Shown one piece after another: positions 1,284-53,877 of a stretch of 64,000 nt of DNA; position 1 is the stretch's first letter, and each line of letters opens with the position of its first letter. The stretch comes from Epithemia pelagica (lineage: Eukaryota > Protista > Bacillariophyta). Made by a program: the position numbers and the translations under genes. The notes below the pieces were generated by a model, which saw nothing but the letters and a program-made list of their open reading frames with translations, did not search any database and was not told the DNA's origin. Location of the stretch: positions 1,550,001-1,614,000 of the forward strand of contig OX337230.1 of assembly GCA_946965045.2 (NCBI GenBank), in the 5' to 3' direction.

Positions 1284-1911
1284 TGTTGAAGATGCTTTCT
1301 TTTGCTTTAATGGGCAATCCGAAGGATGATATTGTGTGGATCTTGAGTTGCTGAGCGCTGAGCGGGAAACAACGAGATTTCAAAATTCAGCTTGTCAATG
1401 ACGGCTACAGGTATAGATCTTCGCTCTTGACAGCGAATTACAAGTCACGCGGCGCGACACAACCGCTGCAGTACAATTTATTTGATATTGAATCTCCAGC
1501 TAAACTGCACTATCGAAATGGGTTGTGTAAGAAAGCGAGAGTACTTATTGCGTCTGCTCGCCACCAGCGAGAGCATTGCACATGCTTGACACCACGCGCG
1601 TGGCAGCTGTCGGTTGTAGGGGGTGTTAGTTTTCCAAGGCAGCAATATGATTGGGTTAGACATGTCACACAACAATTAAACACTTAACGAAAAACGAGTT
1701 AAAAATGTCTTACCTCGATTTAAAACCAATCCCACGAAGGCCCCGAATCACGGATTGGCAGCAAGAAAAAAGCCAAAAAAACCTCCAAGTTGGATTCCAT
1801 CAGCCGATCGAGGCGGTCGCTCGCGCCATTGTCGACAAAACACAAGACGACAACAAGACATTGACCACTTTCTGGCCATCTCAGACCTGTAGACAACGTA
1901 ATCGAATAAAG

Positions 1912-4900
1912 ATGGTTAGTAGGTCATCCTCTGGTGCTGTGCAATCATTTGCAGCAGCACAAAGTGCTGCAAGAGCAGCAATGGGTCCCCAGTCGCAACG
2001 ACTGGGCAACTTGTATAGTCGACTCCCTGTTCGACACGGACAACGACGCTCTGGTTATCAAACACTTACCGGAGTCGTGGAGTTTCAACAAGAGATTGAT
2101 TGTTGTGTGTGTAGAGCCAAACACAACAACCTCCCCAAACCACACAGATCCCACCACATGCTCTGTCCACTCAACACCAAAACAAAGGGAAAACCACACA
2201 AGACAAACGAACTCGGACAGATCAAGAGACTGGTGGATAAAGCAGCGAAGGAGAGGGAAAGAAACAACAAACAACCATTGTCTGAAGCTGAAAAGCACAG
2301 ACCAGGGATCACCATGGAGGACTGGGAGGACTTCATGAAGCCGCGTCCCAATACGGCCAAAAAAGTGTTGAACCCAGGAAAACTCACTCTAGAGTCGTTG
2401 ACAGGTGAGAAGTTGGCAGAAGGGAGAATGGGCGAAATCAGCAACGGTCAAAGTGTGACAGTGACAGAGCTGCGCATGTCGGCTGAAAATTTCAAAAAGG
2501 AAATATTACATAGGGTTACACATGGTACATTCAACGGTATCACGTGTCCCAAGACAATGCATGCGCTTGCCTCATTTATGCAAGAAGCGTGCCTGGGGAC
2601 AAAGCGTGATACGAGTGTGCTATCAAACTTCTTTGACGGTATGGAGTTTTGTGTACCGGCCTGCGCTACCAACACGTGTGCTTTGTACGACTCGTTTTCT
2701 CGCCAGAAACTCTTGGTTGTGGATTGGGAACTCTTTTTTCCTGGAGAAGTACTCTTTTGCCCTCTATGCAATGGTAAACTCCATCGGACACGGAGTAATT
2801 TCTCCAAAAACAAGTGTCTTTTCCCCCTATTCGGAAGCTCTGGTCCCCCAAGATACGCCATTGTCATGCACTATAGGTGCTCGGCATGTAAAACATGCTT
2901 CCAAGGGAATGAAGGACGATTTTTAGCAAAACTCCCACCTTGGATGGCCATGGCATACCCTGTGGAGCCAAAGTACGCTCGTGGGATGGCACATCTTACT
3001 CGAGATGCTACCCACATGCTAGAACACTCTATGCTGACCTACGGCAATGGAGATTATTTTTCTAGAATGATCTACAGTGGTATCAATACAGACTACAAAG
3101 ACAGACAAACGAGGTACTATTCATTCTGTGCATCCACCGGCCAAAAAAGTGAGGACTATCCCAAAAAGGATGGCGAGTGGCTGGTCAACTTCCCTCCACA
3201 AGGTGACACCATCCGTCAGCTGTATGACGATGCGGCTAGTTCCAATTGGAATTGGTGGGGTCTGTCGGATCATGATAGACACACGAGAGAAATGCAAATG
3301 GTGAGATGCGAACGAACATTTGCGAATGATCATACTCACCAGACAGTGAAAAACTATCCCTCAGCCTGTAAGGCAAAGGCCCTGTTTGACGTAGCCAACG
3401 AAAAAGGTGAGATCGCCTGTGCTATTCTCGTTGAAAATACCAAAATCCAGGAAGTGAGCCATGCTGTCGAACAGCTTGCTCGTCGGCCATGGTTTCGTCC
3501 GAAGGCCATGTATACTGATACATGGCCTTCTTCCATTGACTTCTGGGTCTTGATTTGGGGTGACGAGGTGAAGGGTTGCCTCGGCCTGTTTCATTTCCTG
3601 CAGAGAATTGTGAAGACTCTGCGACCAAGACACATTGATTATGGGCGAGCACTCCGTGATCTCAAAATGGCCCTGTATGAGTATAACGATGAGGATATGA
3701 ATAATGTCCTTCAAGCGCTGAAAGAAGGAAAAATGTCAAGTAGCAAGAAACAATACACTGAGGGTGAGATACAGGATCTGCTCGACACTCCAGAGTTTGG
3801 ACGAAGGTATGGAAAGTACATACGAAAAATGATCCGCTCGAAAGAAGTCATCATTGCGAAGCTGGAAGAATTCAAAGTGACCTATAAGGTCACTGCCTCA
3901 CCAGGCAAGCCATCAGCAAGAGGTCGACGAGATCCGCGGACAAATCAACCTCTATTTACGGAGGATACTCATCTCGCGATAGAAAATTGCAAACAAAAGG
4001 CAGTGTATTTGTCAGATCCACTACCACTTGAAGACATGTATTTGACAGTTGCAGCCAACAAGAATTCACGCCACTCCTTACCTGAATACATTGCAGTCAG
4101 AGGGGAATCCAAGTTGGAGAGCTTCCACGACAACCTGGCAAACTTTGCAAATTGTGGAATGCGTGAGAGCCTTGCAGACAATCTTAACCTACAGGGAACA
4201 GCGCAGTACAATCTTACCATTCGATTCAAGCATCGCTTGCTTGCAATGACTCTTGATGAGCGATCTCTTGTTCCAGCCGGATGGGAATGTGTGGTTCCTT
4301 ATTGGAACCACACTGAACTGCGATTCATCAATGAAATGGCTGTGAGTTCTGGATCGCAACAACAATTTCAATGGGTTGAAAACTTACCAGAAGACACTGG
4401 TGAACGCTTTTTTTCGGAATACTTGGCACAACAGAGCAGACGGAAATTGGAGATTCCGAAGCATCCACTCAATGACCGCTGTCAGTGTTGCTTGTGTGCC
4501 AAGTCTGTTGTGCGCCTTCCCCACGACAAGTCCTTTCACCCACCACCAGCACCTACTCTTTCAACACTACCACCAGTCCAAACAGTACAGGGGATGATTG
4601 TTAACCCGTACCGAAAGAGGACACCATCAAATAACAGTGATGAAACAAACCGAGACAATGAGCATGACAAGAGAGAGGAGAATGAGAAAAATGAGAGTGA
4701 GGACGGCAATTCCCCCAAAAGCAGTCCAAACAATCAGAGTGAGGGGTTGTTGTGTGTTCCGATTGTGGGAAATCCAACAGCAGTCGAATCCGAAAAAGAG
4801 CAGCATGTACAGAAAAACCAAAATGCCAGTGAGAAGGAGACGATAACAACAATGGAATCTGGTGACAGTGAGCCTCGACAGGAGGAGAGTACTTACATCA

Positions 4901-5439
4901 AGAATGTGGGTGAGCAAGAACCAAGTGAGACTCGGCCGCTGGTTCCACAAGCACAACAACAAGAACAGGCTGGGGAAGCACGTCACCAAGAAAGTAGCAC
5001 CAGTCAAACAAAGAAGCGAATGAGAGAAGAGAATCAACAAGAACAAGAAAGAGCACAACATAGGCGTGAGATTATGCAACAACTAAATAGTGCACGATTC
5101 AGCTCTGGTTTTGGAACAGTCAACAAGAACGACAGAGTCACCAGCACACCAGCAAGAATCACAACCACAAACACAACACATGCGCAACAAGAACTTACAA
5201 CAATGACAACAAGCCAAGCAAGTGGGCCATTGGCTCAAACACTTTTGGCTCTGTCGTTGCTGATGCCAAATTTAGTTCAACAGCAGCACCATGCCGCGAC
5301 CACAGCTTGGATGCGGCCAACCCCACGAAACCAACGGCAATTCTGTTGTCCGAAGTATTTTGAATACTTCGAGAATGGAAAGCGTGGGAGACCTCATCAC
5401 AACAAAGACTGCCCCAACAAAAATACCAAGAAGCCTTGA
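1912..5439 (+). CDS. Dada-like DDE transposase (frame open from 1705; probable start MVSRS at 1912)
   Basis: Motifs FANDHTH (D, ~3328), ANEKGEI, MYTDTWP (D, ~3517), LGLFHFLQR (xxxH, ~3592), RGESKLESFH (E, ~4117). Cys/His clusters CCVCRAKH..HH.LCP, CPLC..C..C, CQCCLC and C-terminal CC..GRPHH..CP. Confidence 0.8.
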   Translation: MVSRSSSGAVQSFAAAQSAARAAMGPQSQRLGNLYSRLPVRHGQRRSGYQTLTGVVEFQQEIDCCVCRAKHNNLPKPHRSHHMLCPLNTKTKGKPHKTNELGQIKRLVDKAAKERERNNKQPLSEAEKHRPGITMEDWEDFMKPRPNTAKKVLNPGKLTLESLTGEKLAEGRMGEISNGQSVTVTELRMSAENFKKEILHRVTHGTFNGITCPKTMHALASFMQEACLGTKRDTSVLSNFFDGMEFCVPACATNTCALYDSFSRQKLLVVDWELFFPGEVLFCPLCNGKLHRTRSNFSKNKCLFPLFGSSGPPRYAIVMHYRCSACKTCFQGNEGRFLAKLPPWMAMAYPVEPKYARGMAHLTRDATHMLEHSMLTYGNGDYFSRMIYSGINTDYKDRQTRYYSFCASTGQKSEDYPKKDGEWLVNFPPQGDTIRQLYDDAASSNWNWWGLSDHDRHTREMQMVRCERTFANDHTHQTVKNYPSACKAKALFDVANEKGEIACAILVENTKIQEVSHAVEQLARRPWFRPKAMYTDTWPSSIDFWVLIWGDEVKGCLGLFHFLQRIVKTLRPRHIDYGRALRDLKMALYEYNDEDMNNVLQALKEGKMSSSKKQYTEGEIQDLLDTPEFGRRYGKYIRKMIRSKEVIIAKLEEFKVTYKVTASPGKPSARGRRDPRTNQPLFTEDTHLAIENCKQKAVYLSDPLPLEDMYLTVAANKNSRHSLPEYIAVRGESKLESFHDNLANFANCGMRESLADNLNLQGTAQYNLTIRFKHRLLAMTLDERSLVPAGWECVVPYWNHTELRFINEMAVSSGSQQQFQWVENLPEDTGERFFSEYLAQQSRRKLEIPKHPLNDRCQCCLCAKSVVRLPHDKSFHPPPAPTLSTLPPVQTVQGMIVNPYRKRTPSNNSDETNRDNEHDKREENEKNESEDGNSPKSSPNNQSEGLLCVPIVGNPTAVESEKEQHVQKNQNASEKETITTMESGDSEPRQEESTYIKNVGEQEPSETRPLVPQAQQQEQAGEARHQESSTSQTKKRMREENQQEQERAQHRREIMQQLNSARFSSGFGTVNKNDRVTSTPARITTTNTTHAQQELTTMTTSQASGPLAQTLLALSLLMPNLVQQQHHAATTAWMRPTPRNQRQFCCPKYFEYFENGKRGRPHHNKDCPNKNTKKP

Positions 5440-5458
5440 CGGATTGTCCATGGCAATG

Positions 5459-5535
5459 GCTTGTCCATTTTGCCGTTGCTGGCAGGAAGGAGGATCCAGC
5501 CACATCACCGAAATATCATGGCGGATGTGGCTCAA
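5459..5535 (+). ncRNA. Candidate structured RNA element (two covarying hairpins) just 3' of the E1 transposase stop
   Basis: Hairpin A TGCCG-ttgc-TGGCA (5471-5484) and hairpin B AGCCACAT..ATGTGGCT (5498-5532). E3 has different but still paired stems with conserved linkers. Expression not shown. Confidence 0.5.
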
Positions 5536-6377
5536 GCACAAAAAGGAAAACCAAGAAATCCATCACACCAAACCCATGCACCACACCACAAAGAAGAAAA
5601 AGACACAAAACCATTAAGATGAGACGACCCGTATACCTGAAATAAGAAGAACTAAAACATAAGATGAAGAATGAGTTAGAAACATGCCTGTTCAAAAATT
5701 ATGAGAGCGATCTTTCGGTAGATTTTTGTGTCAACGATCGACGTACAGAGCACACATGAAGCTTACCATGGACAGACGTCTTGTACGTTCGTCGAGCGTT
5801 GACCACTGATGTAAGCACAGAAATTTCTGAACTAAGACCAAAATCATTTATGGTGATTGAAGGGGAGGTGCCTTCGCCCCTCATGACAGAGAGTTAAACC
5901 AGATGCAAGGGTTAGACAAGACATGGTAATTCAGCCAATGAGAGTGGAACCGACTAGGATGCAGAAAACGACGGAATCTTACCATTTTGAACGTTGGGAA
6001 TCTCTTCCTTTTTTCTTCCTCTCTTTTTTTCCCTCCCCTTTTTCCCTTCTCTCTTCTGCCTTGGCCCCCCCCATTTTCGTTGTAGGGGGTGTTAGTTTTC
6101 CAAGGCAGCAATATGATTGGGTTAGACATGTCACACAACAATTAAACACTTAACGAAAAACGAGTTAAAAATGTCTTACCTCGATTTAAAACCAATCCCA
6201 CGAAGGCCCCGAATCACGGATTGGCAGCAAGAAAAAAGCCAAAAAAACCTCCAAGTTGGATTCCATCAGCCGATCGAGGCGGTCGCTCGCGCCATTGTCG
6301 ACAAAACACAAGACGACAACAAGACATTGACCACTTTCTGGCCATCTCAGACCTGTAGACAACGTAATCGAATAAAG

Positions 6378-9300
6378 ATGGTTAGTAGGTCATCCTCTGG
6401 TGCTGTGCAATCATTTGCAGCAGCACAAAGTGCTGCAAGAGCAGCAATGGGTCCCCAGTCGCAACGACTGGGCAACTTGTATAGTCGACTCCCTGTTCGA
6501 CACGGACAACGACGCTCTGGTTATCAAACACTTACCGGAGTCGTGGAGTTTCAACAAGAGATTGATTGTTGTGTGTGTAGAGCCAAACACAACAACCTCC
6601 CCAAACCACACAGATCCCACCACATGCTCTGTCCACTCAACACCAAAACAAAGGGAAAACCACACAAGACAAACGAACTCGGACAGATCAAGAGACTGGT
6701 GGATAAAGCAGCGAAGGAGAGGGAAAGAAACAACAAACAACCATTGTCTGAAGCTGAAAAGCACAGACCAGGGATCACCATGGAGGACTGGGAGGACTTC
6801 ATGAAGCCGCGTCCCAATACGGCCAAAAAAGTGTTGAACCCAGGAAAACTCACTCTAGAGTCGTTGACAGGTGAGAAGTTGGCAGAAGGGAGAATGGGCG
6901 AAATCAGCAACGGTCAAAGTGTGACAGTGACAGAGCTGCGCATGTCGGCTGAAAATTTCAAAAAGGAAATATTACATAGGGTTACACATGGTACATTCAA
7001 CGGTATCACGTGTCCCAAGACAATGCATGCGCTTGCCTCATTTATGCAAGAAGCGTGCCTGGGGACAAAGCGTGATACGAGTGTGCTATCAAACTTCTTT
7101 GACGGTATGGAGTTTTGTGTACCGGCCTGCGCTACCAACACGTGTGCTTTGTACGACTCGTTTTCTCGCCAGAAACTCTTGGTTGTGGATTGGGAACTCT
7201 TTTTTCCTGGAGAAGTACTCTTTTGCCCTCTATGCAATGGTAAACTCCATCGGACACGGAGTAATTTCTCCAAAAACAAGTGTCTTTTCCCCCTATTCGG
7301 AAGCTCTGGTCCCCCAAGATACGCCATTGTCATGCACTATAGGTGCTCGGCATGTAAAACATGCTTCCAAGGGAATGAAGGACGATTTTTAGCAAAACTC
7401 CCACCTTGGATGGCCATGGCATACCCTGTGGAGCCAAAGTACGCTCGTGGGATGGCACATCTTACTCGAGATGCTACCCACATGCTAGAACACTCTATGC
7501 TGACCTACGGCAATGGAGATTATTTTTCTAGAATGATCTACAGTGGTATCAATACAGACTACAAAGACAGACAAACGAGGTACTATTCATTCTGTGCATC
7601 CACCGGCCAAAAAAGTGAGGACTATCCCAAAAAGGATGGCGAGTGGCTGGTCAACTTCCCTCCACAAGGTGACACCATCCGTCAGCTGTATGACGATGCG
7701 GCTAGTTCCAATTGGAATTGGTGGGGTCTGTCGGATCATGATAGACACACGAGAGAAATGCAAATGGTGAGATGCGAACGAACATTTGCGAATGATCATA
7801 CTCACCAGACAGTGAAAAACTATCCCTCAGCCTGTAAGGCAAAGGCCCTGTTTGACGTAGCCAACGAAAAAGGTGAGATCGCCTGTGCTATTCTCGTTGA
7901 AAATACCAAAATCCAGGAAGTGAGCCATGCTGTCGAACAGCTTGCTCGTCGGCCATGGTTTCGTCCGAAGGCCATGTATACTGATACATGGCCTTCTTCC
8001 ATTGACTTCTGGGTCTTGATTTGGGGTGACGAGGTGAAGGGTTGCCTCGGCCTGTTTCATTTCCTGCAGAGAATTGTGAAGACTCTGCGACCAAGACACA
8101 TTGATTATGGGCGAGCACTCCGTGATCTCAAAATGGCCCTGTATGAGTATAACGATGAGGATATGAATAATGTCCTTCAAGCGCTGAAAGAAGGAAAAAT
8201 GTCAAGTAGCAAGAAACAATACACTGAGGGTGAGATACAGGATCTGCTCGACACTCCAGAGTTTGGACGAAGGTATGGAAAGTACATACGAAAAATGATC
8301 CGCTCGAAAGAAGTCATCATTGCGAAGCTGGAAGAATTCAAAGTGACCTATAAGGTCACTGCCTCACCAGGCAAGCCATCAGCAAGAGGTCGACGAGATC
8401 CGCGGACAAATCAACCTCTATTTACGGAGGATACTCATCTCGCGATAGAAAATTGCAAACAAAAGGCAGTGTATTTGTCAGATCCACTACCACTTGAAGA
8501 CATGTATTTGACAGTTGCAGCCAACAAGAATTCACGCCACTCCTTACCTGAATACATTGCAGTCAGAGGGGAATCCAAGTTGGAGAGCTTCCACGACAAC
8601 CTGGCAAACTTTGCAAATTGTGGAATGCGTGAGAGCCTTGCAGACAATCTTAACCTACAGGGAACAGCGCAGTACAATCTTACCATTCGATTCAAGCATC
8701 GCTTGCTTGCAATGACTCTTGATGAGCGATCTCTTGTTCCAGCCGGATGGGAATGTGTGGTTCCTTATTGGAACCACACTGAACTGCGATTCATCAATGA
8801 AATGGCTGTGAGTTCTGGATCGCAACAACAATTTCAATGGGTTGAAAACTTACCAGAAGACACTGGTGAACGCTTTTTTTCGGAATACTTGGCACAACAG
8901 AGCAGACGGAAATTGGAGATTCCGAAGCATCCACTCAATGACCGCTGTCAGTGTTGCTTGTGTGCCAAGTCTGTTGTGCGCCTTCCCCACGACAAGTCCT
9001 TTCACCCACCACCAGCACCTACTCTTTCAACACTACCACCAGTCCAAACAGTACAGGGGATGATTGTTAACCCGTACCGAAAGAGGACACCATCAAATAA
9101 CAGTGATGAAACAAACCGAGACAATGAGCATGACAAGAGAGAGGAGAATGAGAAAAATGAGAGTGAGGACGGCAATTCCCCCAAAAGCAGTCCAAACAAT
9201 CAGAGTGAGGGGTTGTTGTGTGTTCCGATTGTGGGAAATCCAACAGCAGTCGAATCCGAAAAAGAGCAGCATGTACAGAAAAACCAAAATGCCAGTGAGA

Positions 9301-9905
9301 AGGAGACGATAACAACAATGGAATCTGGTGACAGTGAGCCTCGACAGGAGGAGAGTACTTACATCAAGAATGTGGGTGAGCAAGAACCAAGTGAGACTCG
9401 GCCGCTGGTTCCACAAGCACAACAACAAGAACAGGCTGGGGAAGCACGTCACCAAGAAAGTAGCACCAGTCAAACAAAGAAGCGAATGAGAGAAGAGAAT
9501 CAACAAGAACAAGAAAGAGCACAACATAGGCGTGAGATTATGCAACAACTAAATAGTGCACGATTCAGCTCTGGTTTTGGAACAGTCAACAAGAACGACA
9601 GAGTCACCAGCACACCAGCAAGAATCACAACCACAAACACAACACATGCGCAACAAGAACTTACAACAATGACAACAAGCCAAGCAAGTGGGCCATTGGC
9701 TCAAACACTTTTGGCTCTGTCGTTGCTGATGCCAAATTTAGTTCAACAGCAGCACCATGCCGCGACCACAGCTTGGATGCGGCCAACCCCACGAAACCAA
9801 CGGCAATTCTGTTGTCCGAAGTATTTTGAATACTTCGAGAATGGAAAGCGTGGGAGACCTCATCACAACAAAGACTGCCCCAACAAAAATACCAAGAAGC
9901 CTTGA
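6378..9905 (+). CDS. Dada-like DDE transposase, E2 copy (frame open from 6171)
   Basis: Translation identical to the E1 ORF in the supplied track. Confidence 0.8.
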   Translation: MVSRSSSGAVQSFAAAQSAARAAMGPQSQRLGNLYSRLPVRHGQRRSGYQTLTGVVEFQQEIDCCVCRAKHNNLPKPHRSHHMLCPLNTKTKGKPHKTNELGQIKRLVDKAAKERERNNKQPLSEAEKHRPGITMEDWEDFMKPRPNTAKKVLNPGKLTLESLTGEKLAEGRMGEISNGQSVTVTELRMSAENFKKEILHRVTHGTFNGITCPKTMHALASFMQEACLGTKRDTSVLSNFFDGMEFCVPACATNTCALYDSFSRQKLLVVDWELFFPGEVLFCPLCNGKLHRTRSNFSKNKCLFPLFGSSGPPRYAIVMHYRCSACKTCFQGNEGRFLAKLPPWMAMAYPVEPKYARGMAHLTRDATHMLEHSMLTYGNGDYFSRMIYSGINTDYKDRQTRYYSFCASTGQKSEDYPKKDGEWLVNFPPQGDTIRQLYDDAASSNWNWWGLSDHDRHTREMQMVRCERTFANDHTHQTVKNYPSACKAKALFDVANEKGEIACAILVENTKIQEVSHAVEQLARRPWFRPKAMYTDTWPSSIDFWVLIWGDEVKGCLGLFHFLQRIVKTLRPRHIDYGRALRDLKMALYEYNDEDMNNVLQALKEGKMSSSKKQYTEGEIQDLLDTPEFGRRYGKYIRKMIRSKEVIIAKLEEFKVTYKVTASPGKPSARGRRDPRTNQPLFTEDTHLAIENCKQKAVYLSDPLPLEDMYLTVAANKNSRHSLPEYIAVRGESKLESFHDNLANFANCGMRESLADNLNLQGTAQYNLTIRFKHRLLAMTLDERSLVPAGWECVVPYWNHTELRFINEMAVSSGSQQQFQWVENLPEDTGERFFSEYLAQQSRRKLEIPKHPLNDRCQCCLCAKSVVRLPHDKSFHPPPAPTLSTLPPVQTVQGMIVNPYRKRTPSNNSDETNRDNEHDKREENEKNESEDGNSPKSSPNNQSEGLLCVPIVGNPTAVESEKEQHVQKNQNASEKETITTMESGDSEPRQEESTYIKNVGEQEPSETRPLVPQAQQQEQAGEARHQESSTSQTKKRMREENQQEQERAQHRREIMQQLNSARFSSGFGTVNKNDRVTSTPARITTTNTTHAQQELTTMTTSQASGPLAQTLLALSLLMPNLVQQQHHAATTAWMRPTPRNQRQFCCPKYFEYFENGKRGRPHHNKDCPNKNTKKP

Positions 9906-9924
9906 CGGATTGTCCATGGCAATG

Positions 9925-10001
9925 GCTTGTCCATTTTGCCGTTGCTGGCAGGAAGGAGGATCCAGCCACATCACCGAAATATCATGGCGGATGTGGCTCA
10001 A
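9925..10001 (+). ncRNA. Candidate structured RNA element, E2 copy
   Basis: Same sequence as 5459-5535 at +4466. Confidence 0.5.
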
Positions 10002-10845
10002 GCACAAAAAGGAAAACCAAGAAATCCATCACACCAAACCCATGCACCACACCACAAAGAAGAAAAAGACACAAAACCATTAAGATGAGACGACCCGTAT
10101 ACCTGAAATAAGAAGAACTAAAACATAAGATGAAGAATGAGTTAGAAACATGCCTGTTCAAAAATTATGAGAGCGATCTTTCGGTAGATTTTTGTGTCAA
10201 CGATCGACGTACAGAGCACACATGAAGCTTACCATGGACAGACGTCTTGTACGTTCGTCGAGCGTTGACCACTGATGTAAGCACAGAAATTTCTGAACTA
10301 AGACCAAAATCATTTATGGTGATTGAAGGGGAGGTGCCTTCGCCCCTCATGACAGAGAGTTAAACCAGATGCAAGGGTTAGACAAGACATGGTAATTCAG
10401 CCAATGAGAGTGGAACCGACTAGGATGCAGAAAACGACGGAATCTTACCATTTTGAACGTTGGGAATCTCTTCCTTTTTTCTTCCTCTCTTTTTTTCCCT
10501 CCCCTTTTTCCCTTCTCTCTTCTGCCTTGGCCCCCCCCATTTTCGTTGTAGGGGGTGTTAGTTTGCTCAGGCAGCAATATGATTGGGTGAGACCATGTCG
10601 TTCCACACAAAACACTTAAAGGAAAACTCAGAACGACATGTCTTACCATTTCAAAAATCAGTCCCCCATCGCCCCCCAAACACGGATTGGCAGCTTGAAA
10701 ATCTCACCAAGTGAGATTCCAAGTGCCGATCCGGTCGGTCGCGGCCGCCAAGTCTCATCTCGGAAAGACGACAATGAGACATTGGCCACTTTTCTGGCCA
10801 TCTCATCTCGTCGATGACACACCTGTAGAAAACGTAATAGAAAAG

Positions 10846-13800
10846 ATGGTTAGTAGGTCACACCAAACAACACAATCTTGGGCTGCTCAACAGGCTGCAG
10901 CAAGGGCGGCAATGGGCCCCCAATCCCAACGACGAGGGAACATTTACAGTCGCTTGCCAGTGCCACAGGGGCAGCGACGCTCGGGCAACCAAACCATGAC
11001 AGGAGTAGTGGAGTTTGAGCCCCACATAGACTGTTATGTCTGCAGGGCTGTCCACAATGGACAAAACAAGCCACACAGAGCCCACCACATGCTCTGTCCA
11101 CTCAACAAAACAACAAAGGGCAAGGCAAAGACACAGGAGAAGGGCCAGATCCAACGACTGCTCGACAAAGCAGCAAAACAACACAAGAAGAACAACAATA
11201 GGCCAATGAATGGCACAGAACAACTCACCCCAGGCAATGTCAGTGAGGAGGCACTGGGTGCCTTTTTTTCTGTTCGCAACAACACGACGAAACAAGTGAA
11301 GACAACGGGCAAGCTCACGTTGGAGTCGTTGGCGACGAAGAAAAAGCCAGTAGAAAGGAAGGTTGGGAAAACATGTGACAGTCACATACCAACAAGTGCA
11401 CGCATGTCGGTCGAAAATTTCAAAACAGAAATTCTACATAGGACAAACATGCTGGTTGAGGCGAGTTCGATTGCTCCCAAGACCATGCGGGCTCTCGCGT
11501 CACTTATTCAGGACACGTGCCTTCGTTCAAAGCGGAGTACAACGGTTCTAGAAGCTTTTTTCGAAGGTATGGAGTTTTGTGTACCGGCTTGCTCTAGGAA
11601 CACGTGTCCTTTGTACGACTCGTTTGTGGGACAGAAACTCTATGTAGTAGATTGGGAACTCTTTTTTCCAAACCAAGTACTGTTTTGTCCTACATGTGGA
11701 GGTAATCTCCAGCGGACGCGGACTAATTTCTCCAAGAACAAGTCGCTTTTCCCCCAATTCGGAATAAATGGTCCCCCAAGCTACGCGATCGTGATGCACT
11801 ATAAGTGCTCGGCATGTGGTGCCAATCACCAAGGCAACGAATCGCAATTTCTCGCGAAACTTCCTCCCCACATGGCCATGGCGTACCCAGTCGACCCGAA
11901 ATACGCGGTCGGCAACTCGCACCTCAAGACTGACGCGACGAGACTCATGGAGCGGCTCATGGTGACTCATGGGAATGCAATTCTATGTGCAGAATATCTC
12001 TATGAATCAATCAACCAGTGCTATATGGACAAAACTATGAGATTCTACTCGGAGCTCCTAGCGACAGACCAAGCAAGTGACCAACCTTATCCAAAGAAGG
12101 ATGGCGAATGGCTCGTGTCTTATCCCCCTCAAGCGGACACCCTTCGTCAGATATACGAGCAGGGTGCTTACTCAGACTCTGTGTGGTGGGGAGTATCCGA
12201 TGTTGACCGACACCAGCGAGAAATACAAATGGTGAAGTGTAGATTATCGTTTGCTCAGGACCACACCTGGGAGGTGGTCAAGAACTACCTTTCCAGTTGC
12301 AAGGCAAAGGTCCTGTGGGATGTTTGCACCGAGACAGGCGAGATTGCCTGTCTTGTCTTGGTGCAATCAACAAAGCTGCAAGAGATTGCCCATGCAGCAG
12401 AGCAATTGTCGCGTCGTATCGGGTTTTCTCCCGTAATTATGTATTCCGATACCTGGCCCCACAAGGATGACTTTTGGGAACTGATACTTGGAGCACGGTT
12501 GATTGGCAGGTTGGGGTTATTTCATTTTTTGCAGCGAATTACAAAGACGCTTCGACAGCGTCATTGCGACCATGGGCAAGCACTTCGTGATTTGAAGGCT
12601 TGCATCTATGAAGAGCACGATGAAGACTTTCAGAAAGTCATCCATGCCCTCAAGACCGGATTGTTGGGAAAGGAATACACAGAAGAAGAGATTTGTGAGA
12701 TGAGAGCAACGAAAGTCTTTGCTCAACGATACAACAAATACATACGAAAAAGGATTCGTTCGGCCGAAGTCATCAAAGGGAAACTCGACGAATTCAAGGT
12801 GAGGTACAAAGTCACCGCCTCAGATGGACAACCAGCTGCTCGTGGCCGTCTTGACCCAAAGTCGGGCCAGACTCTCTTCACTCCAGAAACACACGATGCC
12901 CTGGTGAATTGCAAAGAGAAGGCTCAGTTTTTGGCCGACCCAAAACCAATCGAAGAGATGTATTGTGAGTTGCCACCGAATCGCAATGCAAAACATGGTC
13001 TCCCTGAGTTTCGTGCTTACCGTGGCGAGAGCAAGTTGGAGTCGTTTCACGACAACCTTGCTCATTTTGGGAACTGTGGGATGCGCGAGTCATTGGCAGA
13101 TGCACTAAATTTGTGCGGAACTGCCAGGTACAATCGTACCATTCGACACAAGCTCGCTCTGTTGGATATGAATCCAACAGAGCGAGCGCAAATCCCAGCT
13201 GGATGGGAGTCGGTTGCGCCGTTTGACAACCACTTGCAACTCGAATTTATAAACAAAATGGCAAGGGCAACTGGTGTTAGTGGGCCATTCGCCAACGTAG
13301 AACAAATCCCAGAGGACAACGGAGAACGATTTTTGTCTACTTACCTCAAGCAACAAATGGAAAGAGACAAAACCGTGCCAAAGCATCCGCTCAATGATCG
13401 CTGTCAGTGTTCGTTGTGTCAGGGCAATGCCAAGAGATTGCCCCATGACAGCTCCATTCCACCCTTTGCTTCGTCAGCTTCCTCCTCGTCTGTTGTTGTG
13501 TCTGCTTCATCACCAACCATGGCCGAGATTTATTTGAATCCGTATTTTCCCCAAAGAGGACGGAAACAACCCAAGAGCACCGTCCAAAGCGAAGAAATAT
13601 CCGAAGAAATAGACAACAGCATCAGTTGTTGCGGTGATGTAGCACCAGAACAGTCGGTTCCGGTTGCGAAGGACGCAAACAAACGAAAAGCCGGCAACAA
13701 CACAACAACAGAATCCAACAATCCATCCAAAAAGCAACGCATAGAGCAGCAAACGAATGCGACAGAAACTGGTGAGATGGAAGCTACACCAGGAAATGCA

Positions 13801-14172
13801 ACAAGGGAAGTGGTAAGCTTACCTTCTTTGTCACGACAACAGGCCCAGTTGCATACGGCGACACAGCAGAGCAACACGCAACAAACAAAACAAACAACAA
13901 ATCACCATGCACCACCAGCACAGCAATGCAATCGTCCACCATTCTTTGGACTCCCTGTTGCCATGGCCAAGTACTCCAACCTGTTGCCGCCACCACCACT
14001 CCATCCAGCTTTGTACCCGTGCCATCCGTTCGGCTATCCTCATCGTCCATCGCCACGAACTCAAATCCAGTTTTGTTGCGTGAAGCACAAAGAATACTAC
14101 GACAGTGGCAAGAGGGGACGACCACCACACAGCAAAGACTGTCCAAAGCGGAATTTCCGAGGCTTCGATTGA
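10846..14172 (+). CDS. Dada-like DDE transposase of E3 (track ORF from 10711; homologous start MVSRS at 10846)
   Basis: FAQDHTW, CTETGEI, MYSDTWP, LGLFHFLQR, RGESKLESFH, CQCSLC and CC..GRPPH..CP all align with E1; uninterrupted frame. Confidence 0.8.
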   Translation: MVSRSHQTTQSWAAQQAAARAAMGPQSQRRGNIYSRLPVPQGQRRSGNQTMTGVVEFEPHIDCYVCRAVHNGQNKPHRAHHMLCPLNKTTKGKAKTQEKGQIQRLLDKAAKQHKKNNNRPMNGTEQLTPGNVSEEALGAFFSVRNNTTKQVKTTGKLTLESLATKKKPVERKVGKTCDSHIPTSARMSVENFKTEILHRTNMLVEASSIAPKTMRALASLIQDTCLRSKRSTTVLEAFFEGMEFCVPACSRNTCPLYDSFVGQKLYVVDWELFFPNQVLFCPTCGGNLQRTRTNFSKNKSLFPQFGINGPPSYAIVMHYKCSACGANHQGNESQFLAKLPPHMAMAYPVDPKYAVGNSHLKTDATRLMERLMVTHGNAILCAEYLYESINQCYMDKTMRFYSELLATDQASDQPYPKKDGEWLVSYPPQADTLRQIYEQGAYSDSVWWGVSDVDRHQREIQMVKCRLSFAQDHTWEVVKNYLSSCKAKVLWDVCTETGEIACLVLVQSTKLQEIAHAAEQLSRRIGFSPVIMYSDTWPHKDDFWELILGARLIGRLGLFHFLQRITKTLRQRHCDHGQALRDLKACIYEEHDEDFQKVIHALKTGLLGKEYTEEEICEMRATKVFAQRYNKYIRKRIRSAEVIKGKLDEFKVRYKVTASDGQPAARGRLDPKSGQTLFTPETHDALVNCKEKAQFLADPKPIEEMYCELPPNRNAKHGLPEFRAYRGESKLESFHDNLAHFGNCGMRESLADALNLCGTARYNRTIRHKLALLDMNPTERAQIPAGWESVAPFDNHLQLEFINKMARATGVSGPFANVEQIPEDNGERFLSTYLKQQMERDKTVPKHPLNDRCQCSLCQGNAKRLPHDSSIPPFASSASSSSVVVSASSPTMAEIYLNPYFPQRGRKQPKSTVQSEEISEEIDNSISCCGDVAPEQSVPVAKDANKRKAGNNTTTESNNPSKKQRIEQQTNATETGEMEATPGNATREVVSLPSLSRQQAQLHTATQQSNTQQTKQTTNHHAPPAQQCNRPPFFGLPVAMAKYSNLLPPPPLHPALYPCHPFGYPHRPSPRTQIQFCCVKHKEYYDSGKRGRPPHSKDCPKRNFRGFD

Positions 14173-14176
14173 TCCG

Positions 14177-14250
14177 GGCTGTCCATTTGTCGAGACGACA
14201 GGAAGGAAGATCCAATGGCACACCGAAAGACATGGCGATGCCATCCAGCC
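14177..14250 (+). ncRNA. Candidate structured RNA element, E3 version
   Basis: Hairpin A TGTCG-aga-CGACA (14188-14200); hairpin B ATGGCA..TGCCAT (14215-14244) enclosing CACC-GAAAGACAT-GGCG. Confidence 0.5.
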
Positions 14251-15182
14251 ATCACAACCAATCCACCCACCCAAAAACCACCTTCATTACCACCACTGCA
14301 TGCCCCATCATCGCTCCAATTACAAGAACTTAAAAAATGAATCGACCAACAACCTGAATACCTGAATGACCAAGAACACAACAAGCACGACAAGATAGTT
14401 AGTAACAAAAATACGAAAAACAGAATTTATGAGACATCCATATCTTCTCTAGCCACCGTAGCACATGGAAAGGGCACCCGGAAAGTGACAAGGCTCTTGC
14501 GGAATTCGGGTGTCAAGTCAAACCTGTTGAACGACAGACAATTAAAGGTGAGAGGCCAATAAAGACAGAATGTTGCTACCGGTCTTGTAAGGGGAAATAT
14601 GCTTCCACGTACTTACCTGCCTGATCCCCCTCTGAGGACATGAAAGGTGATGTTACGACATGTCACAACAATCCTCGAAAATGCGAATGAAACGATCGAA
14701 CCAGAACGATGGAATCCAGCTGCCAAAACTCTCCCCTTTTTCCTCCCCTTCTTCTTCCTCTCCTCCCCCTCCCCTTCTCTCTTCTGCCTTGGGCCCCCCC
14801 ATTTTCGCTGGCAGCCATCCAGGCGAAAAAGACAGGGGGAGGAAATTCTCCCCGGGGGAAATAGTCCCTACATTCCTAATATATCGGCACCAATACCATA
14901 GCGATGGAGCGCAGCGACAAAAATAATTCGTGCGAGCGAAGCGAGCTTAGCTGCGCGATCTCTACACGAACGACGCGAAACAAACAATGGCGAACGCAAC
15001 AAGACAAACATGGTTATCCCAACACGTGGCCACCCTCCTTCAACCACCACACTAGTTCGACCAAACACGACATGGCTGAACTCGGAGTCCTTTTTCTGTT
15101 TGATTGGCTGTTCTTGTGTTTCTGCTTTGATTGCGGCACGAGTTTGCCTTGTGTCCGTCGTAATGACAAGGACGAGCTTCCC

Positions 15183-15645
15183 AATTTCTCGAATGATGAG
15201 TGGTTAATATTTCATTTTGGAAGAAACTAAAACAGATTGGGATGGGTCATCTGGCCCATGGGAACGATGATCCTGGGCCAAGACATTTCTCGAATGACGA
15301 GTGGTTACCTAAAATCCTGAACGAAACTAAAAAAGATTGGGACGGGTCATCTGGCCCATGGGTACGATGATCCTGGGCCAAGCCATTTCTTGAATGACGA
15401 GTGGGTTACCTAAAATCCCGAACGAAACTAAAAAAGATTGGGATGGGCCATCTGGCCCACTGGGCCAAGCCATTTCTCGAATGACGAGTGGGTTACCTAA
15501 AAACTTGAACGAAACTAAAAAAGATTGGGATGGGTCATCTGGCCCATGGGTGTGATCATCCTGGGCCAAGCCGTTTCTCAAAAAACTTGAACGAAACTAA
15601 AAAAAGATTGTAATGGATCATCTGGCCCATGGGTACGATGATCCA
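15183..15645. repeat. Tandem repeat of ~100-bp units (about 4.5 copies, later units shortened) in the 3' subterminal region of E4
   Basis: GAAACTAAAA recurs at 15223, 15323, 15424, 15511, 15593; each unit carries TGGCCCA...TGGGCCA. Confidence 0.9.
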
Positions 15646-15734: not shown

Positions 15735-18700
15735 TCAGCCACTGCCCTGAGTGCATTTTCCGATTTGCCAAGCACCAGGACACTCATCTTGACTTTTCCC
15801 GCACATCCTACATGTTCGCTTCCGCCGCTTCGCTTTATCTCTTCCCCGTTTGCTCGCAGTGATAGCAGGTTGGTTAGTGAAGGTTCCATTTGAATTGGCA
15901 CCTACTTGCGTATTTGCGACTACTCGTGTTCCTCTTGCTCTAACAGTTGGTACTGGAAATGTTGGACAGGGTGTATTTTGTGGCAGCGGCCAGTGTACTA
16001 TCTGGGCTGTGTCTGGAGGTTCTTGATGGTCTGGCAACCAAACAACAGTTTGATCAGCATCATTTACTTCGTCAGTGTCTTCACCATTTTGGTTCATTGG
16101 TTTAATCCGACTTGCCATCGGATAACCGGGAAGAGAAAGCTCGCGAAGCCGTGAAATTTCCTCTGCCATCGATGCAACAGCGTCCTCCATCCGCAGATTT
16201 TGTTGGAATATTTCCTTGTACGTTCTCAAATACACAGGCAGTTTTGGCAGAATTGATTTACCATTGACCCGTTCAAGCCATCGAATGGCCATTTTTTCCA
16301 AATCATCAAGTAGGGCTGGCGTATCAAGAGCTAATTGCCGGAAGGCTCTCATCTCGTCTCGACTTGTGATTGGCGTAAATGGAAGCTTCACACTTTGATG
16401 TTTGGCAAGATATCTTTGTTCTCTGGTCAATGGTATATCATCAAGAGGAAGCGAATTCACTGCATCCGTCAACAAGGTTGGTTGTAGCGGAATGACTCCG
16501 CATGACTCTTCCGTTTGTGTATAGTCCCCGCTATTCACCCAGGTTGGAAAGACCAGAGTGTTATGGTTTTTTTCAACCAGATACTGAATTGCATCAATTA
16601 ACCACGTGTCAAAGTGCCCCACTCTTGGAAACCCAGCGCGCCTCCTTTCAGCCATTCGGTGATTGTACCGATGGCGATGTTCTTGTCAAAGGCACCAATA
16701 AACTGGCAAACCCAAGTAGTTTGATGACTCTTCACCCCTTCGGTTGATTTTCCGAACGTACATTGAAAAACCTGATGGGTCAGACACGTAGCCTTGTAGA
16801 ATTTCCTTGAGTACATTGTCTGCTTTTTTCCATGCTCGGTTGTTGAAAAGAGGCTTGTTGTCATCCAATTTGTTTCCGAACGCAAGATAGACATTCCTCA
16901 CCCTCCAGTAGAGCTGACTCGGTGGCAGTACAACTCTTGGCACGCACTCTAAACAAAACAACGTTCTGTAGTACATCATTGCTTCAATTTCTTGGTTTGA
17001 TTTGCCATCATTCCGAAGTGCTTTCTTTGCTCTATCCAAGGCGTCTGGGTCCCAGGCAAAGAACGCTTGTGACAGAGCAACAAAAAAGGCCTTCCGAAAC
17101 TTGTGCTTCACCGGCACTTTTATGCGATCCATGTAATGCCACGGATCTCCCAACACAGATCTGAATTTATCAACAATTGCTTCTGGAGGACTAGAAAGAT
17201 GAGAATTCTCTAAGGCAAAGCTGTCTTTGGATAGTGTCTCAAGATATTCAATGATTACCATCTCGTCACGAGTCAAACCACTCCGGAAATTAAGGTCTCT
17301 CTCGAACAAGTTTCCAGAATTGTCATTGCCCGTCATATTAGTTGCAGCCATTTCATGCTGATTCACATCCACATTGTTTGCAGTGAACGTTGGACCGATA
17401 TCCTCCATATTTTCGTCTCCACCACTTTCTATTCTCTCATTTGAGAGATCGCAATCATCCACCAGTATTTGCCATTTTGGTTCCAACGGTGCTGGAGTAT
17501 CCTCAGTCCTTTCATCATTTCCGTTATCCATTTCATTATCAGAAGGAGATGCTTTATGTAGCTTCAACATCGTTGTGGGGATTCGTACACGAAAAGGTTG
17601 GCCATCTAGGGCAGTATCTTGGAAATGGCCAATCGTGGCTGCCTTTCCATCTCCAGTGGTAAAACCAGGAATTCTCAGAAATGGTCCAAGAACTTTCTTG
17701 ACTTCGACAATGCAGCTGTTTGTTGCTTGCCCTGACAACCTTGGCTTGAGAACAACCGGTTCCTGCCAGTTTGGATCATTGACAATAGTGCCAATTGCTG
17801 CAATTGGGGCCTTTTCAGCGTCACCTGTAGTACCGCGAGATGGGATAACATCAACCTTAGTTCCTGCTGTAGCATTGTCCTTCTCCAGTCGATGGGCATA
17901 GTCCGGGAAACTGATTAGCTTTAGGTAACATTCTAAGGACTTGATTGCGTCAAGAGCAGCATACTCTAGCTGCTCTACCGCGAGATTTGAATTACCCCAT
18001 TTGGAAGAACGGACACTGTCATCCTTACTCATCCTCTCCTGTAGTAACAACTCAACCAGTGCCTTCAAACCAATTCTAGCATCATGCACAAGGTCTCGGT
18101 CTTTTGCAAGTCGAGCAATGTCCATACACTTCACGGTGTCTGTCACATCCCGAATGCCAAAGTCGTCACCAACTATTCGAATGTCACCAAGCACCCTCTT
18201 GCCGACAAATGTAATTGTACTATCTCTGAACAAATCCAGCAATGAATCTGGCAACCTTGGTAGTTGCCTTACATGCAAAAGCAGGGCTTTGATTGACCCG
18301 GACTCATTTTTGTATGCAATCTGCAATAGCCCAACTTTGTCCCGACCGTGTGGAGGAAACTTTGTTTTCGACCCATATTCGTGTTCCTCATCAAATCCAA
18401 GCACCCGATCTTCAATCGGGCGTGAGTTCAGCTCTTGCCAAAGTAGTGCAATGGCCCTGTCAATCTCTTGCATAGATTTTACCGAGTGGTAGTCAGTCGC
18501 TTCAACAGAACATATTGGAATGTTGCCAGGTGTATTCTCCACGTGCATTGCAACTGTTGGTGTGGTTGAATTCAACTGCGTTTCCATTTTCTTCAGTGAT
18601 GGCAAATGCTGACTGAAGAATGCAATATCTTCATTAGGTTTGTCCGTAAACAAGAATTTTGGATGCGCAAATCCATACGCAGAGAGAGTTTCCTTGACAC

Positions 18701-20015
18701 TGGCCAAGGCACAGACCATTTGGTCATGGCCGTCAGTAACCACATGAAACTGAAGCCGAACTTCACCAAGTTCATTGGTTGCCGTGACAAGGCCTCGAAA
18801 GACTCTGCCTCCTCTGAATCGAGTTAATTGTTTAGCTTCTTTATAGGATACGTCCCAGCGAAGAACTGAAGCTGTCCTTTTTTTAAGCTCACGAAGCATG
18901 TGGTCTTCCAGCGAATTTTCATATAACTTGAATGCATGACTGAGGTAGTTTGGAGAACAAGTTCGACCGGCATAGAGCTCTCTATTCGTGAAATTGCTAA
19001 ACATAGAAACTTCAAGGGCTGGATTGAATTGTCTCTTTCTTGCTATTTCATTCTCTCTCTGTAATCACTTCCGACTGTGAGTTTTCCGACTAAGCTCGTC
19101 TATCAACGCAGCCATCTGCTTGGGACGAATCCCCAAAATGAAGAGGGATCGCATCAGATCAACAACTGTATTGTCCAGACCCGACTTGTGCGTCAAAAAT
19201 GCTGGAAAATATGACCCTGCATTGTAAGGCAAGGTGGTAAGTATGGCTTCAGAACTTCCAATCCAGGTATATGGATCGTCCTGTCTTTTGTCGCGCTTTT
19301 CCTTGCACTCCTTGCATATGTATCGGCGTGCCATTACAAAGTAGTGGCCTGTTAATGACTGCACCCGCCGTGCCACATGGTCTGGCCAACCGTGTGTACA
19401 AACAGTTTTCTTGCAATGAGTATTTGGACATTGGAAAAGTCCCCAATGAATATCTGGGAGCCAGACAAAGACATCTCGGTAATAACCCTCCTCTGAAAAC
19501 TCAATTGAGAGATTAGAACAAATTTTTTTTGCATGGTATGTGCGAATCCAATAATCATTTGTTTGTAGCATTGTGGTTAGCCAGCGATCAACAAGCTGAT
19601 TGTTGATTGCCGATGTTTCCTTCTGTATTTGTTGACGAATTGCCCTCAAATATCGATCCACAATGGAATTGGCCTCTTCTTCAATGTCCACTTCTTGAAA
19701 ATTATCTTCATCAGGCTCATCAGTCGACTCATCATCACTGTCGTCAAAATTGTCATCATCAAAGTCATAGCTATGGTCAATGTCCCTCTCTTGCAAGTTG
19801 TCTTCGACTGCATTGTCATTCAAGTGATTTCTTGCAGGGCCAAAATATTGGTGGAGGAAATTGACCTGTCGGTTGGTTTGGTGCCTCTCTCTGATCCTCC
19901 TTAGGCGTGCTTCCCTCCTCTCTGCATGAGTTTTTGTTGTTCCAACAGGACGACCACGTCCTCTTTTTCCATTCGGCATTGTCGGCATGTTGTGTGCAGG
20001 TGCAGATAACCACAA
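15735..20015 (-). pseudogene. Dada-like transposase with internal DEDDy 3'-5' exonuclease; two in-frame TGA stops and loss of the catalytic-E segment
   Basis: Track ORFs 19065-20015, 16686-19004 and 15735-16655 share one frame, separated by TGA at 19065-19067 and 16686-16688. Motifs: CP..C, LRWDVSYK (D), TNELGEVR, LFTDKP (D), exonuclease VLGFDEE / VLGDI / EYAALDA, LGDPWHYMDR (DxxH), HRYNHR..GFPRVGHFDTW. No RGxxxxE between YWCL and QEHRH. Confidence 0.8.
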
Positions 20016-48491: not shown

Positions 48492-49248
48492 TAGTAGAAC
48501 TCTCATTGAGAATTCAGAAGGGTAATAGGTAGTTGGGTAAAAGGCTCGCTGAGCCGACAATCGAATCACCAACCGATACAACAATCCTCCACGGGTCAGA
48601 GAAGAGTTGCAAGTCAAAGTCCGCCGTGGGTGGGGGCAGTCGGTCCACTGATAAGAGGTTAGTCTTAAGATGAGTGTTAAAATGGTGATATTAATGATTG
48701 TGAGATGATTACTAACTAAGGTGTTTGATGAAGGTCGAGGTCCTGGCTCTTGTATACGGCCATGGATCTGGTGTGATAGGTCCTCAAATGGTTGGAGTAG
48801 ACCTGCATTGTTGTATTGAAAGTATATGCAGTTGTATATCATATACCAATGCCAACAGCTCTTGCTTTGTTGTGATATAGGTAGTTTTCTTGGCGCGTTG
48901 TTGATTGCATTCTTGGAATTGTGGGAATGGAAATATGGTCTCGCGTGATCGTGATTCGTGCTTTGATTACTTAGGTCGTTGAGGTAAGTCGTGGAGGTGC
49001 TCACTCGGATCGTGATTGCGCGCGCTTGAGAATACTGGGCGCGCACGTGATGGGCCATAGTCAATATCCGAGCGGTCGCCGATAGCGCGTGCATTGCGAG
49101 CATGCCTTGGCCAAAATTAAAGGTCCGCGAGCATGCCGTCATTCTTTTCTCACTTTTACACAAATGTCATCGGATGCCATAAAATACTAGCATCAGTCGA
49201 TGTGTTGTAGATTCCACCATCACCTAGTTAAAGGTGAGAATCCTAACA
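48492..49248 (-). repeat. 3' LTR (TG...TA)
   Basis: Direct repeat of 53121-53877 at offset 4629. Confidence 0.92.
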
Positions 49249-53120: not shown

Positions 53121-53877
53121 TAGTAGAACTCTCATTGAGAATTCAGAAGGGTAATAGGTAGTTGGGTAAAAGGCTCGCTGAGCCGACAATCGAATCACCA
53201 ACCGATACAACAATCCTCCACGGGTCAGAGAAGAGTTGCAAGTCAAAGTCCGCCGTGGGTGGGGGCAGTCGGTCCACTGATAAGAGGTTAGTCTTAAGAT
53301 GAGTGTTAAAATGGTGATATTAATGATTGTGAGATGATTACTAACTAAGGTGTTTGATGAAGGTCGAGGTCCTGGCTCTTGTATACGGCCATGGATCTGG
53401 TGTGATAGGTCCTCAAATGGTTGGAGTAGACCTGCATTGTTGTATTGAAAGTATATGCAGTTGTATATCATATACCAATGCCAACAGCTCTTGCTTTGTT
53501 GTGATATAGGTAGTTTTCTTGGCGCGTTGTTGATTGCATTCTTGGAATTGTGGGAATGGAAATATGGTCTCGCGTGATCGTGATTCGTGCTTTGATTACT
53601 TAGGTCGTTGAGGTAAGTCGTGGAGGTGCTCACTCGGATCGTGATTGCGCGCGCTTGAGAATACTGGGCGCGCACGTGATGGGCCATAGTCAATATCCGA
53701 GCGGTCGCCGATAGCGCGTGCATTGCGAGCATGCCTTGGCCAAAATTAAAGGTCCGCGAGCATGCCGTCATTCTTTTCTCACTTTTACACAAATGTCATC
53801 GGATGCCATAAAATACTAGCATCAGTCGATGTGTTGTAGATTCCACCATCACCTAGTTAAAGGTGAGAATCCTAACA
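53121..53877 (-). repeat. 5' LTR (TG...TA)
   Basis: Direct repeat of 48492-49248. Confidence 0.92.

Follow-up and report, generated by a model that had tools for sequence, protein, structure and literature searches.

Is the short block that follows the transposase stop codon in a row of transposon copies of the diatom Epithemia pelagica a nucleic-acid structure kept by selection and, if so, in which molecule does it act? At the start of the window, a 64,000-nt stretch of contig OX337230.1, an element of ~4.4 kb is present three times head to tail; we call these copies E1, E2 and E3 (Table 1). An initial annotation, made from the letters of this DNA, had described two covarying hairpins just after the stop codon of two diverged Dada-like transposons and had proposed a functional RNA or single-stranded DNA element. 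Judged from the sequences, the block appears to be a clade-restricted structured element in the 3' region of a Dada-like DNA transposon, and with two lineages from one diatom genome behind it we regard it as a good candidate rather than a discovery. As to its role, we tentatively favour, with a little less than even confidence, a selected cis-acting structure in the 3' UTR of the transposase mRNA that is specific to this clade.

The E1 and E3 versions both read as the initial annotation had quoted them, and a closing helix, P1, extends the end of the E1 block to 5537. The TGA is separated from the block by 19 nt in E1 (the stop codon ends at 5439) and by 4 nt in E3 (the stop codon ends at 14172); the sequence behind the block is A-rich in E1 and A/C-rich in E3. 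When the two versions were folded together by RNAalifold, 26 pairs were obtained, seven of which had changed on both sides and were still paired, while one was lost to a gap. Four of the compensated pairs lie in the outer stem of stem-loop B, where they make up four of the six aligned pairs, one lies in stem-loop A and two are in P1. Both annotated hairpins were thus found by RNAalifold, but P1 with its two further compensated pairs had been missed. The two changes reported for hairpin A, C-G to T-A and G-U to G-C, are correct, and the outer stem of hairpin B has indeed been swapped and yet is paired. The inner core of stem-loop B, with its A.C mismatch, A-rich loop and 3' purine bulge, is invariant between E1 and E3. 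The annotated conservation of the linkers and inner core stands, but the 'CACC/GGCG' stem that had been read there contains the A.C mismatch, and the energy-minimised inner stem is CCG/UGG with one G.U pair. Folded singly, the sequences gave modest z-scores of -1.4 to -3.0 (for E3 only -1.4 to -2.0). In the minimum-energy fold of E1 an extended hairpin A replaces or competes with P1, which counts against the mRNA reading that we favour.

Table 1. Positions of the transposon copies, their transposase genes and the parts of the structured block within the window
Feature	Position	Strand	Remarks
Element E1	1613..6078	+	ends from comparison with dispersed copy L007
Element E2	~6079-10544	+	exact 4466-bp duplicate of E1
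Element E3	10551..14806	+	ends from comparison with dispersed copies L005 and L006
E1 transposase ORF	1705..5439	+	1244 aa, no intron needed; C-terminal Cys/His motif, then TGA
E2 transposase ORF	6171..9905	+	identical to E1 ORF
E3 transposase ORF	10711..14172	+	~1132-1153 aa, intron-less; ORF-caller start GTG; database protein P0002, 1132 aa
Structured block, E1 copy	5459..5537	+	~80 nt, three helices
Structured block, E2 copy	9925..10003	+	exact twin of E1 block
Structured block, E3 copy	14177..14250	+	diverged version
E1 closing helix P1	5459-5463 with 5533-5537	+	GCUUG/CAAGC
E3 closing helix P1	14177-14181 with 14246-14250	+	GGCUG/CAGCC
E1 stem-loop A, lower stem	5464-5466 with 5485-5487	+	
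E1 stem-loop A, core stem	5471-5475 with 5480-5484	+	
E3 stem-loop A			core stem TGTCG/CGACA
E1 purine-rich linker	5485-5498	+	listed as invariant; one base differs between E3 and E1
E1 stem-loop B, outer stem	5498-5506 with 5524-5532	+	
E1 stem-loop B, inner stem	5508-5510 with 5519-5521	+	
E1 stem-loop B, A-rich loop	5511-5518	+	
E3 stem-loop B			outer stem ATGGCA/TGCCAT; inner core same as E1
Weaker second island of conservation, 3' non-coding region	5624..5684	+	E3 counterpart 14349-14407

The weight of the compensated pairs depends on how far the two versions have diverged. The E1 and E3 transposases are 55% identical in amino acids, and the tree puts ~1 amino-acid substitution per site between them. 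Their four-fold degenerate sites are 42% identical, against 26% expected from base composition alone, and the neutral divergence is ~1.1 substitutions per site. In the three variable helices 14 of 32 positions (44%) are identical, a neutral-like rate. The linkers and the inner core are identical at 36 of 43 positions (84%; binomial P = 2.4e-8 against the four-fold-site yardstick). When neutral change was simulated at the four-fold-site rate, all 16 variable pairs were kept in only ~1e-6 of trials. As a control, the same align-and-fold procedure was run on 330 windows of 85 columns each, on both strands, over the whole E1/E3 alignment; at least seven both-sided compensated pairs were found only in windows over the block, and the next best window had six with a weak energy. 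In addition, nowhere else in the 3' non-coding region, which has otherwise diverged, is an island so well conserved. These figures are to be read with an alignment register that was picked after inspection of the data, and the covariation comes from two independent lineages only, too few for R-scape or another formal test of covariation. Since its helix letters have drifted freely and yet pair, the fold is probably under selection. Pairing, linkers and inner core kept together over ~1.1 substitutions per site are the signature expected of a selected single-stranded nucleic-acid structure.

We saw 11 copies of the element in the assembly, the window's own three included. Six are E1-type and five E3-type, so there are exactly two independent versions of the block. 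E2 arose by a tandem duplication of 4466 bp, with 100% identity over 1613-6098; as exact tandem duplicates, E1 and E2 were counted as one sequence. The block was unchanged in all seven full-length uninterrupted copies (E1, E2, E3, L005, L006, L007 and the E1-type copy of L088) and, among the four decayed copies, in the two of E3-type (L088 and L089). The only two block substitutions seen among the copies are both in decayed E1-type copies: a C to T change in the 5'-truncated fragment of L004, by which a U.G pair is kept, and a G to A change in the frameshifted copy of L090, by which one outer pair of stem-loop B is broken.

The host element was compared with the Dada superfamily, founded by Kojima and Jurka in 2013 in a paper whose text uses the word 'hairpin' 0 times (PMC3706591). 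Dada elements are described there as target-specific, inserting into small-RNA genes with a target duplication of 6-7 bp, and as having a DDE core with D/CxxH after the second Asp, N-terminal CCCC and C-terminal CCHC zinc fingers, sub-terminal inverted repeats and tandem insertions (PMC3706591). Neither the E1 nor the E3 transposase has a domain in Pfam. Its relatives form a large family in diatoms (the named match is Seminavis robusta) and in microbial-mat metagenomes, and two family members, P0023 and P0009, gave DUF6729 matches just below the cut-off. Like Dada transposases, the protein is large and has an N-terminal four-Cys finger (C352-x2-C355 ... C392-x2-C395), a candidate DDE core and a C-terminal Cys/His motif. 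The candidate catalytic residues D542, D605 and E801/805 have a Dada-like spacing when compared by eye with the published description (PMC3706591), whereas the position of the Dada DxxH reads G-L-F-H, that is GxxH. The C-terminal CC...H...C motif is common to most distant relatives with readable C-termini, and its spacing differs from that in Dada-U6_DR. Further likenesses are the head-to-tail tandem insertions and the ends of E1, which have no terminal inverted repeats and carry a 9-bp sub-terminal inverted repeat (CCAAGGCAG / CTGCCTTGG). On the other hand, target duplications are irregular in L005, L006 and L007, the flanks of these three copies are unrelated and no small-RNA gene was found as the target of any insertion. 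Short-motif look-ups in the Dada Dataset S1 found nothing. We consider the label 'Dada-like', as used in the initial annotation, reasonable on the zinc-finger motifs, the sub-terminal repeats, the tandem insertion and the DUF6729 near-matches, though short of proof.

Another likeness comes from a neighbour. On the minus strand at 15735-20015 there is a fourth element that is Dada-like. It is divided into three ORFs, matches DUF6729 with an E-value of 1.9e-12 and has a second-Asp-like segment followed by a DEDDy 3'-5' exonuclease (PF01612). Such an exonuclease after the second catalytic Asp is also found in the Dada elements of Ectocarpus and Laccaria (PMC3706591). A direct BLASTP comparison of the protein of this element with that of the block-bearing family was not significant. 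Between E3 and this element, at 15184-15582, a unit of ~100 nt occurs four times in tandem with 63-82% identity. An 11-nt spacer, GTTGTAGGGGG, stands before each of the three copies E1, E2 and E3 and so also separates them; it is absent after E3. At L088 an E1-type copy is again directly followed by an E3-type copy, and at L004 an E1-type 3' fragment stands directly before a member of a third family. This arrangement suggests that the elements insert beside one another's ends. Another feature of the element's 3' terminal region is a run rich in pyrimidines at 10467-10503.

The block has a narrow distribution. In a maximum-likelihood tree the E1-type and E3-type families are sisters (100/100) and the L002 family branches next. 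The block is absent from the three nearest paralogous families of the same genome (L002, L003 and L004), which counts against our favoured reading, and the simplest history would be a single gain on the stem of the E1 and E3 families. In L002 the motif ACCTGAATACCTG, which belongs to the second island listed in Table 1, stands directly 3' of the stop codon; in E1 and E3 it stands ~190 nt further on. Because of this position in L002, the block would fall within a ~190-nt stretch that belongs to the E1 and E3 clade only. The second, weaker island of the 3' non-coding region (ATACCTGAA ... AGTTAG.AACA) occurs in three families, in L002 at 6214-6290, and would be older than the hairpin block because it is common to all three. 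Its role could be that of a transposase-binding site or of a signal for polyadenylation or termination.

Beyond this genome, an exact-pattern scan of metagenome contigs for the linker and core gave 0 matches. A protein-guided scan of the metagenomes gave 80 loci with 37-50% identity, 61 of them with at least 150 nt after the stop codon. In these 61 distant relatives the block motifs were absent, no blastn-short match exceeded chance, and a covariance model built from the block had no convincing match (the best, a spurious one, had an E-value of 0.66). The conservation just after the stop, if taken as a general feature of such transposons, is therefore not borne out by the three nearest families or by the 61 distant ones. 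Folding of the first 100 nt after the stop across the wider family gave a mean z of -0.12, the same as in a control window, and this too counts against the mRNA reading. A few relatives have palindromes of their own in this region. L049 has a 19-bp perfect hairpin after the stop (~4260-4305, z -6.6), the sequence of which is unrelated to the block, and L066, L061 and L058 have in common a GCGACTAA/TTAGTCGC palindrome ~40 nt after their stops, likewise unrelated to the block, with arms that are uncompensated in L061 and L058.

We compared the block with known kinds of sequence. It is not a coding or spliced exon, an outcome that the initial annotation had named as refuting its reading: no reading frame is conserved across it, as the initial annotation had stated, the C-terminal Cys/His motif of the family ends before it, and the nearest family ends its protein in the same way without the block. 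The Rfam covariance models, a search that had been suggested at the outset, gave 0 matches in the whole window at the gathering score and none over the E1 or E3 block at E<=10, and ARAGORN predicted 0 tRNA genes in the window. Similarities of the block to the element ends or to the insertion flanks were visible by eye, but none of them beat shuffled sequences, and long-range pairing of the block with the 5' UTR was not above shuffles either. Resemblances to a SECIS element, a C/D box, a K-turn and a hammerhead core, and similarly to an Sm site, Pol III A/B boxes and the 18S 3' end, were looked for by eye; each was absent from one version or was a low-complexity resemblance only.

Its place on the coding strand, 4-19 nt behind the stop codon of the transposase, makes the block most likely part of the 3' UTR. 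According to the reading that we favour, it would have arisen once, on the branch to the E1-type and E3-type families of this Dada-like cut-and-paste transposon, and purifying selection would have kept it in both active lineages since. As part of the 3' UTR of the transposase mRNA it would act in cis; the conserved unpaired linker and the core of stem-loop B would form a binding platform and the helices its scaffold, and the role may be in mRNA stability, 3'-end formation or translation, by which the dose of transposase would be set. The alternative that the structure acts on the opposite strand or as DNA, either in an antisense RNA or as a hairpin or cruciform in single-stranded DNA during replication or transposition, is in our opinion unlikely, but it has to be taken seriously. 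The minus strand folds slightly better than the plus strand (consensus -27.6 vs -22.6 kcal/mol) with the same seven compensated pairs, which counts against a sense mRNA, and the A.C mismatch of the plus-strand inner core becomes a G.U pair there; P1, the core of stem-loop A and the outer stem of stem-loop B consist of Watson-Crick pairs in both versions with the exception of one G.T in E1. Conversely, the plus-strand consensus has three G.U pairs, two of them present in both sequences, which turn into A.C mismatches on the opposite strand and so favour the plus strand, and ~545 nt separate the block from the element's 3' end. The transposon DNA hairpins known to us are situated at or beside element ends, and we know of no DDE cut-and-paste step that requires an internal single-stranded fold; both points count against a role as DNA. 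Another possibility, which we hold to be quite improbable, is that the block has no function and is palindromic DNA whose arms were re-copied from each other by replication template switching, so that compensation is only mimicked. By template switching, hairpins can arise and be maintained and several 'compensatory' changes can come about in one event; it is a published mechanism that could imitate compensation in a single helix (PMC8794818). The outer stem of stem-loop B is perfect in both versions, with no intermediate wobble pairs, there are just two lineages, and the unrelated perfect hairpins after the stop in a few distant relatives also fit such a process. We gave it low weight because it leaves the conservation of 36 of the 43 unpaired and inner-core positions unexplained (neutral 42%, P 2e-8); moreover, three helices would each require events of their own, fixed in active lineages, while the remaining 3' non-coding region has decayed.

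The initial annotation had also listed readthrough control, a ribozyme and targeting among the possible functions, and while the signature of a selected structure supports its general proposal, these particular roles found no support. It is very unlikely that the block is transposon RNA beyond ordinary UTR control, either bound by the putative Cys/His knuckle of the transposase, as autoregulation or as a preference for its own copy, or processed into an RNA cofactor. Less probable again is a trans-acting or catalytic RNA, such as a self-cleaving ribozyme, a captured fragment of a small-RNA gene, or a guide or cofactor RNA. The block has a multi-helix junction with invariant single-stranded joints, the C-terminal Cys/His motif of the transposase could bind nucleic acid, and Dada elements target small-RNA genes (PMC3706591); against this, neither an Rfam family, even at E<=10, nor a tRNA was matched, which leaves the ribozyme without backing, and there was no sign of targeting, as the block is not significantly similar to the ends of the element or to the flanks of its insertions. 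Nor did the block form a duplex with the 5' UTR above shuffles, dispersed copies have identical blocks in unrelated flanks, and the nearest families transpose without it. The least probable of all is a recoding signal, that is, a 3' structure stimulating UGA readthrough to give a C-terminally extended transposase. Both ORFs end in UGA, the E1 context UGA-CGG resembles what we take to be a known leaky context, and the zero frame is open after the stop for 60 codons in E1 and 55 in E3. All three frames are open there, however, because the region is T-poor; the distance from stop to structure is 19 nt in one version and 4 nt in the other, the E3 context is UGA-UCC, the in-frame extension is unconserved, its peptides having only 'GLSI' in common, and in family members lacking the block the end is at the same position.

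RNA folds kept by selection are familiar from retroelements and viruses, while to our knowledge they are hardly documented in eukaryotic cut-and-paste DNA transposons, and we know of no structured internal element described for Dada. The 3' UTR stem-loops of non-LTR retrotransposons (R2 and the stringent-type LINEs) are recognised by the element's own reverse transcriptase. They resemble the block in being element-encoded 3' UTR folds with covariation, little conservation of primary sequence and a lineage-specific occurrence; however, they are templates or recognition sites for reverse transcription, whereas the element studied here is of the Dada-like DDE type. A LINE-type recognition stem-loop was rejected on the ground that the element has no reverse transcriptase (no Pfam domain, and only DUF6729 in relatives). 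The readthrough pseudoknot of MuLV and the stability element of Rous sarcoma virus are similar to the block in their position, since they too directly follow the stop codon of an ORF in a mobile element. The former needs a fixed spacing of ~8 nt and a conserved downstream ORF, neither of which is present here, and the latter, unlike the block, is ~400 nt long and pyrimidine-rich. ENE triple-helix motifs have been found in the RNAs of transposable elements, e.g. Copia93/Evade (PMC12501189). An ENE resembles the block in that it is folded, lies in the 3' portion of a transcript made from a transposon, probably influences the stability of that RNA in cis and is conserved in pairing more than in sequence. 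An ENE, though, has an internal loop of two facing U-rich strands that clamp a downstream genomic A-tract or a poly(A) tail, while the block belongs to a DDE DNA transposon, has no sequence family and contains a single U run (UUUU in E1, UUU in E3), which faces the purine-rich AGGAAGG and is predicted to pair with it; an ENE triple helix was rejected on this account.

If the fold controls the transposase mRNA, it would be an example of a DNA transposon lineage that has acquired and retained its own module of post-transcriptional control. Its gain would be cleanly dated, two sister families having the block and the next one lacking it, and natural comparisons with and without the block are thus available in one genome. 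If instead the block were an RNA partner of the transposase, this would be the first case of such a structured partner for any eukaryotic DDE cut-and-paste transposase.

Two other repeats were seen in the remainder of the window. About ten copies of a repeat with an 18-nt period, 61-73% identical, are present at 58146-58433. Additionally, 300 nt or more are repeated exactly and in direct orientation at 48492-48791 and 53121-53420, 4629 bp apart; the two copies may be a pair of LTRs.
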